From the sequence record KJ019095.1: 64,000 nt of DNA. One strand, written 5' to 3'. Position numbers and translations under genes: made by a program. The notes beneath the pieces were generated by a model. It searched no databases and was not told the origin of the DNA. It worked only from the letters and a program-made list of their open reading frames with translations. Each line of letters opens with the position of its first letter. Within the stretch, counting starts at the first letter, position 1. Positions 13,401-59,795 of the stretch are shown here, in pieces.

Positions 13401-13446
13401 AAACACATAAATAAGATATGTAAAGTTCTTATTACAACACTTCCAT

Positions 13447-13558
13447 CTAACCGAGACCTACGGGGAAGTAAAATACGTCTCTAATACCTACACCGGAGGG
13501 TGGTGTAGGAATAATACTATCGTCAGCTCCCCCTGGCACTACTTACCCTTTTTACACA
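13447..13558 (+). ncRNA. Structured psbA 5' leader, PhotoRC-II-like RNA motif
   Basis: Hairpins GAGAC/GTCTC and CCTACACC/GGTGTAGG immediately upstream of psbA, the known location of this motif in cyanophages. Confidence 0.65.
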
Positions 13559-57856: not shown

Positions 57857-58462
57857 ATGACAGAAGCGACAGAAACCAAGAAACCGCGTAGCGCACGAAA
57901 GGCACGCAAACCAGCGGCACCCAAAGTCCCTACCTCCCTACCAAACAATCCTTTGATGTTTGAGATTCTTGACATGGCATCCCGTACTAGGGGTACTGAA
58001 AAGAAGGTAGATGTTCTCAAGAGATACGGGTGTGGTGCTCTAAAGGCACTATTCATCTGGAACTTTGATGAAACTGTAGAGTCTGCTCTACCACCAGGTG
58101 AGGTTCCCTACTCTGGATATGAAGAACAGCATGTATACAGTGGAACACTAACTGATAAGATTGAAGAGTCTTCACGTCAGATGTATGAGAATGGAAGTTT
58201 CTCATTGGGTTCTACTGATGCCAACGCTAAGACTACACTAAGAGCACAATGGAAGAACCTCTATCACTTTGTTGAGGGTGGTAATGGTGGTCTATCTAAA
58301 ACACGTCGTGAGATGATGTTTATCAACCTCCTAGAATCTGTTCATCCCCTGGAAGCAGAGATCCTCATCCTAGTCAAGGATAAGGAACTTGACACCAAGT
58401 ATAAGGTTCCCTTTGAGGTTGTAGAAGAAGCATTCCCCGAGATCCAATGGGGAGGACGTTGA
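57857..58462 (+). CDS. Hypothetical T4-like cyanophage protein
   Basis: LFIWNFD...LPPGEVPY...RREMMFINLLESVHPLEAEILILVKDK; ATG at 57857 preferred over the track's 57845. Confidence 0.75.
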   Translation: MTEATETKKPRSARKARKPAAPKVPTSLPNNPLMFEILDMASRTRGTEKKVDVLKRYGCGALKALFIWNFDETVESALPPGEVPYSGYEEQHVYSGTLTDKIEESSRQMYENGSFSLGSTDANAKTTLRAQWKNLYHFVEGGNGGLSKTRREMMFINLLESVHPLEAEILILVKDKELDTKYKVPFEVVEEAFPEIQWGGR

Positions 58463-58488
58463 CATAAATACAAAGGATATGTTATAAT
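58459..58488 (+). promoter_or_regulatory. Consensus sigma70 promoter
   Basis: TTGACA (58459) - 18 bp - TATAAT (58483) with extended TG; predicts a transcription start near 58495. Confidence 0.85.
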
Positions 58489-58495
58489 ATCCACA

Positions 58496-58581
58496 CGTTC
58501 AACCCACTTCGGTGGGTCGCAAGTAAGTCGCGGAACGGATTCGTTCATCCAGGAAACTGGACGCAAACGACTGAAGGAACG
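58496..58581 (+). ncRNA. Glutamine riboswitch-like (glnA-type) leader with tandem/nested aptamer
   Basis: P1 CGTTC/GAACG, P2 ACCCAC-TTCG-GTGGGT, junction CGCAAGTAAG, AGTCG/CGACT pairing, TGAAGGAACG 3' end; lies upstream of a DUF4278-like ORF. Confidence 0.75.
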
Positions 58582-58615
58582 GGTTTTAACTAACCTCAAC
58601 TTCAGGAGTACTACT

Positions 58616-58783
58616 ATGAACACTCTCGCACTCATCAAAAAGCAGATCAACAAAGCTGCCGCACTTCACAACGCTCAGATCTCTCACACCGCCTATCGTG
58701 GTGTTGAGTATGATACTCATTGTGTAGAGTCTTCCGAGACACACGGCACTTTCTGCTACCGCGGACGCACTTACAATAAGTGA
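58616..58783 (+). CDS. DUF4278-like small protein (55 aa, not in ORF track)
   Basis: CAGGAG RBS; MNTLALIKKQINKAAALHNAQISHTAYRGVEY...TFCYRGRTYNK with two YRG motifs. Confidence 0.8.
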   Translation: MNTLALIKKQINKAAALHNAQISHTAYRGVEYDTHCVESSETHGTFCYRGRTYNK

Positions 58784-58803
58784 GTTCTAACTGAATAGTG
58801 TAG

Positions 58804-58835
58804 GAAAGGGAAGGACTTGTTTCTTCCCTTTTTTT
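58804..58835 (+). terminator. Rho-independent terminator
   Basis: AAAGGGAAG...CTTCCCTTT plus T-run. Confidence 0.75.
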
Positions 58836-58866
58836 GTGCTATAATATAAACAAGTATTCTATCATC

Positions 58867-59046
58867 ATGGACACAGACAAAGTAAAGTTTCTCATTCAAT
58901 CCATAGAGGTTCTCATTGATGAACTAAAATCAGAAGTATATGCTGAGGGTGAAACTTTTAAAGTAAGTGAAACCCAGTACTCAGAGGAATCAGAAATTCC
59001 AACGACTATAACAAACTTTTATCCTGAAGTAACGGACGATCTATGA
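58867..59046 (+). CDS. Small hypothetical protein
   Basis: MDTDKVKFLIQSIEVLIDELKSEVY; follows a TGCTATAAT promoter. Confidence 0.7.
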   Translation: MDTDKVKFLIQSIEVLIDELKSEVYAEGETFKVSETQYSEESEIPTTITNFYPEVTDDL

Positions 59047-59795
59047 AACCAGTCAAGGCAGATACACTCCTCAAACTAGATCCTCACCAGAAGGTTGAGA
59101 TGATCCGTTGTACTCCCAACCCACAGCAACTTGTGTTTATGGGTGGTAAGAATGACTATAGTGAGTTACCTATTGAAGACACAGACATTCCTCAAGAGAA
59201 GGAGTGTGGTGAGTGGGTTATTGAGCAACTCTTAGCGAACGAGAGAGGACACTGGGGACCCCTAGAACACCCCTCTATCACCTTCTCCTGTAGTGGGTTC
59301 GTTCATAATGTTATCGTTCAGGCAAGAACCCATAGAGTAGGTATTAGTTTTGATGTACAATCACAACGATATACCTGCAAGAGAATCATAAAAGTAGCAG
59401 AGGGGAAACTATCACCCCAGTCAGTATTCTATGTGAGACCTCCTGGTTTCTATACTAATAGGAAGGGGAAGAAGTACGAATGGATAGACGCAGACTATCA
59501 AACTCAGTTAGGTCTCTGTCAGGCTGCAGCTGAACGATTTGCTCGTCAGTTTGAGAATGGTGTATCTGAAGAACACGCTCGTGATTATCTACCACAGAAT
59601 ATTCGTCAGAACTTTGTAGTCACCTTTAGTCTTCGTTCTCTCCTACACTTCCTAGATCTTCGAGCTAAACTAGATGCTCAGTTGGAAATCCAAGCTCTAT
59701 GTGAGGCTATGATTGAACCTACTAAGACCTGGATTCCTGAAATCTTTGAATACTACTCAGAGAAAAGACTACACAGGGCAAGACTTGCCCCCTAA
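59043..59795 (+). CDS. thyX: Flavin-dependent thymidylate synthase
   Basis: GHWGPLEH, QARTHRVGISFDVQSQRY, ARDYLP, RSLLHFLDLR...AQLEI. Confidence 0.95.
   Translation: MKPVKADTLLKLDPHQKVEMIRCTPNPQQLVFMGGKNDYSELPIEDTDIPQEKECGEWVIEQLLANERGHWGPLEHPSITFSCSGFVHNVIVQARTHRVGISFDVQSQRYTCKRIIKVAEGKLSPQSVFYVRPPGFYTNRKGKKYEWIDADYQTQLGLCQAAAERFARQFENGVSEEHARDYLPQNIRQNFVVTFSLRSLLHFLDLRAKLDAQLEIQALCEAMIEPTKTWIPEIFEYYSEKRLHRARLAP

Follow-up and report, generated by a model that had tools for sequence, protein, structure and literature searches.

Introduction

Until now the glutamine riboswitch has been regarded as a simple aptamer, in some cases arranged as tandems of adjacent copies. In the Glutamine-I class (glnA type; Rfam RF01739), as found in the Synechocystis gifB leader, helices P1 (CGUUC/GAACG), P2 and P3 meet in a three-way junction with the joining strands CG(C/G)AAGUA and GAAG, at the 5′ end of the messenger RNA for a DUF4278 protein whose translation is turned on via strand pairing with the ribosome site. 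The Glutamine-II class (Downstream-peptide; RF01704) of marine picocyanobacteria has the same binding-site nucleotides and lies upstream of short DUF4278 peptides with two YRG motifs. In both classes the glutamine site comprises a CGUUC/GAACG helix with a CGC strand along the groove, plus a long-range C:G pair with the G after GAACG (Huang 2019, PMC6698751); in the Glutamine-II crystal two molecules form a dimer by domain swapping, which creates a hybrid CGUUC/GAACG helix (same source), and a review presumes that this swap does not occur in vivo. Tandem glutamine riboswitches, with two same-ligand cores per leader, have been described (Weinberg 2010; Sherlock et al. 2022), with tandem glnA RNAs in PMC2864571 and 157 doublets in PMC9481103, and glutamine riboswitches in T4-like cyanophages are also published (PMC9964418, a 99-nucleotide (nt) glnA hit in S-CREM1; PMC9602691). 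Here we describe a related leader at positions 58459–58835 of a 64,000-nt stretch of DNA (the window) from Synechococcus phage ACG-2014f (KJ019095; Kyanoviridae, a T4-like cyanomyovirus), the locus being 100% identical to that record. The best overall explanation of this RNA, and one that we consider very probable, is a Glutamine-I (glnA-type) aptamer with a P3 that leads into another three-way junction; a gene for a 55-residue DUF4278-type peptide follows it.

The ACG-2014f leader has the Glutamine-I elements named above but differs in several respects: P3 appears to open into a second aptamer-like junction (the inner unit) and not into a hairpin, the outer junction is CGCAAGUA as against CGGAAGUA in the Rfam consensus, and the leader is phage-borne behind a constitutive-looking sigma-70 promoter, whereas the gifB promoter is NtcA-repressed. 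Unlike Glutamine-II, the inner unit has the Glutamine-I strand order in circularly permuted form, no pseudoknot with the P2 hairpin around GGAACG and a sub-threshold score, and its predicted strand swap is intramolecular and supported by covariation. Published tandems lie side by side with their own platforms, whereas the units described here would be nested, share P3, exchange P1 strands and have one platform. The tandem glycine riboswitch is alike in having two same-ligand aptamers joined by helices, one platform and possible cooperativity, but it has another fold and ligand, and its adjacent aptamers dock by tertiary contacts instead of being nested via a shared helix. In the published work on glutamine riboswitches that we covered, which did not include Ames and Breaker (2011), we found neither a nested strand-swapped topology with one platform nor open reading frames (ORFs) inside aptamer loops.

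Results and Discussion

Identification and parts of the aptamer

A preliminary description of this DNA had proposed a glutamine-riboswitch-like RNA containing two CGTTCA-hairpin-CGCAA units, and both proposals hold. The units begin at 58496 and 58542, and the Rfam Glutamine model (RF01739) matches 58494–58585 with 41.1 bits, above its threshold of 35 (E 1.6e-5 for the 64-kb window). Its P1 CGUUC/GAACG, P2 hairpin, CG(C/G)AAGUA and GAAG elements are all aligned with posterior probabilities of at least 0.9, and the alignment places 41 nt, the inner unit, as an insertion in the P3 loop. Of the two Rfam models suggested for a covariance search, only the glnA model is thus above threshold; the Downstream-peptide model (Glutamine-II, RF01704) gives 32.1 bits at 58539–58589 against a threshold of 33, with its P2 stem non-canonical at 6 positions. 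Membership of the inner unit in Glutamine-II is rejected on this score together with a strand order unlike the Glutamine-II pseudoknot. No further glutamine riboswitch turned up across the whole KJ019095 record. The parts of the leader and the evidence for each are as follows.

58496–58501, +: outer P1 5′ strand CGUUC with junction A (Rfam alignment; invariant in 84 leaders)
58502–58517, +: P2a hairpin, 6-base-pair (bp) stem and UUCG loop (covaries, with U-A, A-U and C-G variants at a base pair)
58518–58525, +: outer junction CGCAAGUA, the putative CGC binding-site strand (role taken from Huang 2019, PMC6698751) and one E-loop half (matches the Rfam consensus)
58526–58530, +: P3 5′ strand AGUCG (pairs with 58568–58572)
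58532–58538, +: first GGAACGG, 3′ strand of the inner helix P1i (paired change with the second CGUUC)
58542–58547, +: second CGUUC with A, 5′ strand of P1i (comparative fold)
58548–58561, +: P2b hairpin, 5-bp stem and GAAA loop, the slot of a small ORF (ORF1) in most relatives (covaries)
58562–58567, +: inner junction CGCAAA (CGCAA in 73 of 84 leaders, CGCAC in 10, CGGAA in 1)
58568–58572, +: P3 3′ strand CGACU (covaries with 58526–58530)
58573–58582, +: GAAG (other E-loop half), outer P1 3′ strand GAACG and the G expected in the long-range pair (Rfam alignment)
58571–58608, +: putative expression platform, CUGAAG (58571–58576) with CUUCAG (58600–58605), overlapping the Shine-Dalgarno sequence AGGAG (58604–58608)

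Comparative evidence for a nested fold

The leader and its peptide were found in 395 phage records, nearly all Synechococcus myoviruses, and relatives of the peptide are encoded in 591 or more IMG/VR stretches; more divergent leaders were added by a pattern scan for CGTTCA...CGCAAGTA, and after parsing the comparison set consisted of 84 distinct two-unit leaders. The preliminary description had allowed two readings, namely a tandem pair of P1-P2 aptamers or one glnA-type aptamer whose P3 encloses the second unit, and had observed that AGTCG (58526) can pair with CGACT (58568). These strands (58526–58530 and 58568–58572) are indeed complementary, and in relatives four P3 pairs are altered on both sides, AGUCG/CGACU becoming AGUCA/UGACU in one lineage and a helix of 8–9 bp with A-U to U-A and G-C swaps elsewhere; variants such as AGUCAC with AUGACU preserve the pairing. 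The comparison favours the second of the two readings, in which the second unit does not close on itself but pairs with the first GGAACG strand, such that P1i joins the first GAACG with the second CGUUC and outer P1 the first CGUUC with the second GAACG.

When 17 diverse compact leaders are fitted to the nested structure, 94.8% of cells are paired and both sides have changed in 12 pairs, a level reached by none of 500 shuffles, whilst sliding the partners cuts pairing to 32–53%; RNAalifold on 17 diverse compact leaders independently gives outer P1, P2a, P1i and P2b. The P1i double change GCAACG with CGUUG (G-C to C-G) occurs 46 times (38 distinct) in riboswitch context among the approximately 120 IMG/VR matches listed, and neither single mutant occurs in that context among the 120 matches listed for each single-change scan. 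The double mutants are found in two different P3 backgrounds and mostly retain a wild-type first CGTTCA and second GAACG, so that a tandem fold would be mismatched in each of its P1 helices and the nested fold would lose no pair. The nested fold is, in addition, 3 kcal/mol more stable than the tandem fold by nearest-neighbour energy. From P3 covariation, the pair counts, RNAalifold, the P1i double change and this energy we conclude that the nested fold is the probable one.

In the inner junction the second CGUUCA, P2b, CGCAA and the first GGAACGG come together; its conserved nucleotides are those of a glutamine site, and all binding-site elements are present twice in the ACG-2014f leader. As judged by strand order, the inner unit is effectively a circularly permuted second aptamer in which P1 is capped, P3 is open and common to both units, and the GGAACG strand is swapped; the outcome is a predicted strand-swapped double aptamer feeding one expression platform. 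P3 is probably made more stable by the inner unit, and a second glutamine may bind there, which would sharpen the response. If true, a nested, intramolecularly strand-swapped double aptamer with a single output would be a new build for a two-site RNA sensor, and the domain swap of the Glutamine-II crystal would have a natural counterpart.

Expression platform and switch direction

The CUGAAG strand of the platform overlaps the 3′ end of P3 and the GAAG junction, and its helix with CUUCAG is present in the minimum-energy fold; formation of the outer aptamer requires the GAAGGAACG strand that is also used by this ribosome-site helix. Among the leaders compared the helix covaries. CUAAAG occurs solely with CUUUAG-type partners (35 leaders), CUGAAG is partnered by CUUCAG in 29 leaders and by CUUUAG, through a G-U pair, in 9, and an A opposite C was never observed among these leaders; the choice of G or A in GAAG follows the base opposite it in the helix that masks the ribosome site. 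This covariation suggests that the leader is an ON switch acting on translation, the mode shown for cyanobacterial gifB. In such a switch a strong host-type promoter would start the RNA 1–3 nt ahead of the aptamer, CUGAAG would pair with CUUCAG without glutamine and mask part of the Shine-Dalgarno sequence, and glutamine would lock GAAGGAACG into the outer aptamer, exposing the ribosome site for translation of the 55-residue peptide. Glutamine sensing by the phage leader is well founded by homology; for the ACG-2014f RNA itself we infer glutamine binding, the ON direction and cooperativity.

In the minimum-energy fold GUUCA at the 5′ end of the aptamer (58497–58501) also pairs with UGAAC (58617–58621) in the peptide start region AUGAAC, which may perhaps represent a second OFF-state helix; relatives also use AAU as second codon, so the support is slight.

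The downstream peptide

58616–58783, +: 55-residue peptide gene with two YRG motifs, PHROG 545, GenBank Syn7803US34_283 (ORF and profile matches)

The preliminary description had located this ORF correctly but had considered it missed by the track, whereas the public record in GenBank does list a hypothetical protein here. Variation is greatest at third codon positions, in line with coding sequence, and the peptide matches PHROG 545 at E 1e-36, with residues 26–54 corresponding to the DUF4278 match behind a phage-specific 24-residue N-terminal extension. That the peptide is DUF4278-like, as had been proposed, is substantiated at family level: of the 22 diverse peptides that lie downstream of such leaders, 21 match DUF4278 at E ≤0.01 (best 2.9e-7), and both YRG motifs are invariant. 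A profile search of the Protein Data Bank with the peptide returned no meaningful match, and a search of a protein atlas returned just the peptide's own clusters and a weak DUF4278 cluster.

The association of glutamine riboswitches with DUF4278 proteins and IF17, taken as established in the preliminary description, is confirmed by the literature (Klahn 2018). DUF4278 is the N-terminal part of IF17, dispensable for inhibition of glutamine synthetase but stabilising the protein (Klahn 2018), and the C-terminal residues in contact with the enzyme are missing from short DUF4278 peptides (literature on IF17). The phage peptide resembles IF17 (gifB) and IF17-like DUF4278 peptides (Prochlorococcus PMM1846) in its DUF4278 homology, its small size and basic character and its control by a glutamine riboswitch; unlike IF17 it has only 55 residues and the N-terminal extension described above, and no C-terminal IF7-like inactivating module was found, the match at residues 26–54 leaving no room for one. 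Inhibition of glutamine synthetase by the peptide would accordingly be a guess, since short DUF4278 peptides are without the contacting residues, and modulation of nitrogen assimilation by it is put forward as a hypothesis. On the latter hypothesis the phage would read host nitrogen status early in infection and dose a peptide of a family that the host puts under glutamine control, and the function of DUF4278 peptides would become testable in a phage–host system.

Open reading frames inside the aptamer loops of relatives

ACG-2014f is the compact exception amongst its relatives, since 67 of the 84 leaders have 140–190 nt coding for a small protein, ORF1 (PHROG 504 in most leaders), in the P2b loop. 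ORF1 starts directly after the 5′ stem strand (UCCC-AUG); its frame continues across the 3′ strand of the stem, then CGCAA and the 3′ strand of P3, which gives the product a terminal WDAND or WDAKAD, and its stop codon, UGA or UAA, forms the start of the GAAG/AAAG junction. With compensatory changes, the P2b stem is kept closed across the inserts in 64–67 of these 67 leaders. Third-position entropy is 0.05 in the final five ORF1 codons, versus 1.32 in the ORF body, which implies an RNA constraint overlaid on the coding sequence. In the main (AGUCG-type) lineage the ORF1 ribosome site GGAG is the P1i loop, where compact leaders of that lineage have GAU(U) or GGUA. Unrelated small-protein families, three or more of them (L082, 695–862; L587, 577–770; L026, approximately 453–650), are found in the P2b slot with identical borders and a shared C-terminal DAND-stop from the aptamer core.

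Some relatives hold an ORF of approximately 66 residues in the P2a loop, such as gp196 of Syn9 (DQ149023; L586, 200–890), in which gp197 lies in the P2b loop, gp198 is the DUF4278-type peptide and all three lie behind a single promoter. In the Syn9 leader Rfam gives no glutamine match even at an E of 1, and the glutamine scores of the S-RIM44 and S-RSM4 leaders are sub-threshold; leaders with loop ORFs thus score under the Rfam thresholds or are missed, and glutamine sensing may be much commoner in cyanomyoviruses than is annotated.

It is conceivable, and we offer this tentatively, that T4-like cyanophages carry a phage-specific strand-swapped double aptamer whose loops hold translated small ORFs, with translation and glutamine sensing mechanically coupled. 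High glutamine would then close the inner unit, repress ORF1 and open the downstream peptide gene (ORF2), ribosomes finishing ORF1 would melt the helix masking the ORF2 ribosome site, and ACG-2014f would be a stripped-down form, a bare sensor.

Two further arrangements were seen amongst the relatives. In L008 (IMGVR_UViG_3300021347_000236) an ORF for a protein of approximately 180 residues resembling HNH endonucleases appears to lie in the P2a loop and to read into the aptamer core, and P3 is a wholly different 7-bp helix, GAGCAUA with UAUGCUC. Contigs L208, L263, L295 and L323 are without the usual ribosome site after the second GGAACG and have instead ACUGAAGGAAAC, a hairpin and a third CGUUCAUCCC, a layout that suggests arrays of three or more units.

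Alternative explanations

Several observations weigh against a nested double aptamer. Because the four P1 strands of ACG-2014f itself are identical, only relatives can decide the fold; the lack of single P1i mutants is drawn from a sample of approximately 120 matches listed per scan, and the double mutant may stem from few events spread by recombination. The inner junction has no E-loop, accepts a flipped pair where outer P1 is invariant in the 84 leaders, and may be structural only. Nearest-neighbour energies favour the OFF fold (−45.2 kcal/mol) over the closed aptamer (−34.5 kcal/mol) by approximately 10 kcal/mol, which means that ligand energy, tertiary contacts or co-transcriptional folding must contribute to switching, and the 55-residue peptide by itself scores 23.1 bits against DUF4278 (PF14105), below the Pfam cutoff of 25.3 (E 9.4e-5). 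Two independent side-by-side aptamers, each pairing CGUUC with its own GAACG in the manner of Glutamine-II units and acting pseudo-cooperatively, would be in keeping with the Glutamine-II scores of 32.1 bits for the second unit and, in S-RIM44, 28.8 bits for the first, with the 157 glutamine doublets that Sherlock 2022 (PMC9481103) counts as pseudo-cooperative tandems, and with the fact that the first unit could close during transcription ahead of the second unit's synthesis. Both scores, however, are under threshold, the 3′ hairpin of the model is mismatched in ACG-2014f, P3 covariation ties the two units together, and the GCAACG/CGUUG double mutant breaks both tandem P1 helices yet retains P1i. 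Whereas a pseudo-cooperative tandem calls for independent closure and a platform for each aptamer, we find one ribosome-site helix and exchanged P1 strands, and the tandem arrangement is the less stable by the 3 kcal/mol given above. As the main fold it is rejected on P3 and P1i covariation, RNAalifold and energy, and as an account of the locus we regard it as improbable.

The nested fold would also accommodate a single functional aptamer, the inner junction being merely a structured extension of P3 or a remnant of the ORF1 slot that binds no glutamine and confers no cooperativity. This is suggested by the missing E-loop and shorter joining strands of the inner junction, by its tolerance of the C-G to G-C flip and of occasional CGC changes, by relative L161, which is entirely without the first GGAACG, and by other phages (L151, L157) with single canonical aptamers and a plain P3 hairpin. 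We think this serious rival nonetheless the less likely reading, given that CGUUCA, CGCAA and GGAACGG of the inner unit are near-unchanged across very divergent phages, beyond what a spacer helix would need. Unrelated ORF families with identical borders in the same loop slots, and promoter palindromes overlapping the −10 box, could alternatively mean that in T4-like cyanophages the main use of the conserved strands is as joints for recombination, or as landing pads for cassettes of small ORFs, sensing being lost or secondary. The compensatory changes that preserve stem closure across inserted ORFs, the near-invariant third positions of the last five ORF1 codons and the covarying ribosome-site helix are, however, marks of selection on RNA structure, and make this very improbable. 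The preliminary description is, in sum, partly supported: its sensor reading is right, as is the nested possibility that it allowed, its output is hypothetical, and the architecture that emerges from comparison is worth bench work.

Transcription signals

58459–58488, +: sigma-70-type promoter, probably early, with −35 TTGACA, an 18-nt spacer and extended −10 TGtTATAAT
58805–58835, +: intrinsic terminator with 11-bp stem, CUUGU loop and U run

Positions 58459–58835 read as an independent transcription unit of promoter, glutamine riboswitch relative, 55-residue peptide gene and terminator, as the preliminary description had held, and each of these features lies where it had been placed. The promoter boxes (TTGACA, 58459–58464; TATAAT, 58483–58488) match at 12 of 12 positions, with TG at 58480–58481, which bears out the perfect TTGACA-18-TATAAT promoter claimed, and the stop codon of the upstream DUF6433 gene (58460–58462) falls within the −35 box. 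A −35/−10-like pair, mostly TTGAC(T/A)-17/18-TATAAT, is present in 78 of 80 related leaders; since the end of its −10 box sits 6–10 nt (mostly 7–9) ahead of CGTTCA across these relatives, the RNA is expected to start essentially at the aptamer, in ACG-2014f 1–3 nt upstream of 58496. The terminator closing the unit likewise agrees with the earlier claim, having stem arms at 58805–58815 and 58821–58831, a T run to 58835 and a fold z-score of −3.3, although a simple terminator scan of the window did not list this hairpin. Covariation and sequence features show the promoter, P2a, P2b, P3, P1i, the ribosome-site helix, the coding ORF and the terminator. Amongst marine metatranscriptome contigs one covers 58486–58781 and another ends at 58834; they agree with the promoter and terminator and lend weak support, as contig ends cannot prove transcript ends.

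The −10 box is embedded in a palindrome (window positions 58476–58494, GGATAT...ATATCC), and GGTCTATAATAGACC occurs in the promoters of many relatives. This palindromic region resembles the promoter-stem-loop cassettes described for T4-type phages.

Distribution and neighbouring features

Amongst approximately 186,000 species genomes the nested junction pattern was found in 17 stretches, 11 of which we count as real, all on phage-sized contigs (188–194 kb) or on short contigs resembling mis-binned ones. In the picocyanobacterial family it occurs in one of 401 genomes, on a contig of this sort, and was not found in the 400 others. The junction pattern is strict, and within that limit the nested form looks phage-specific; a host origin is not supported, the strict-pattern matches lying only on phage-like or mis-binned-looking contigs. 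Cyanomyovirus-like contigs with the leader are filed in bacterial or archaeal bins or single-cell assemblies (L576, a 188-kb contig of a Nonlabens xiamenensis assembly; L569; L580; L577/L579), and likely reflect contamination, mis-binning or infected cells.

Directly 3′ of the terminator lies another extended −10 box, TGcTATAAT (58837–58845), ahead of a 59-residue gene (58867–59046; PHROG 2848) that overlaps the start of thyX (59043–59795). Elsewhere in the window, a PhotoRC-II RNA (RF01717) at 13427–13522 on the plus strand scores 69.4 bits against a threshold of 39 and is a second known cyanophage regulatory RNA in this stretch.

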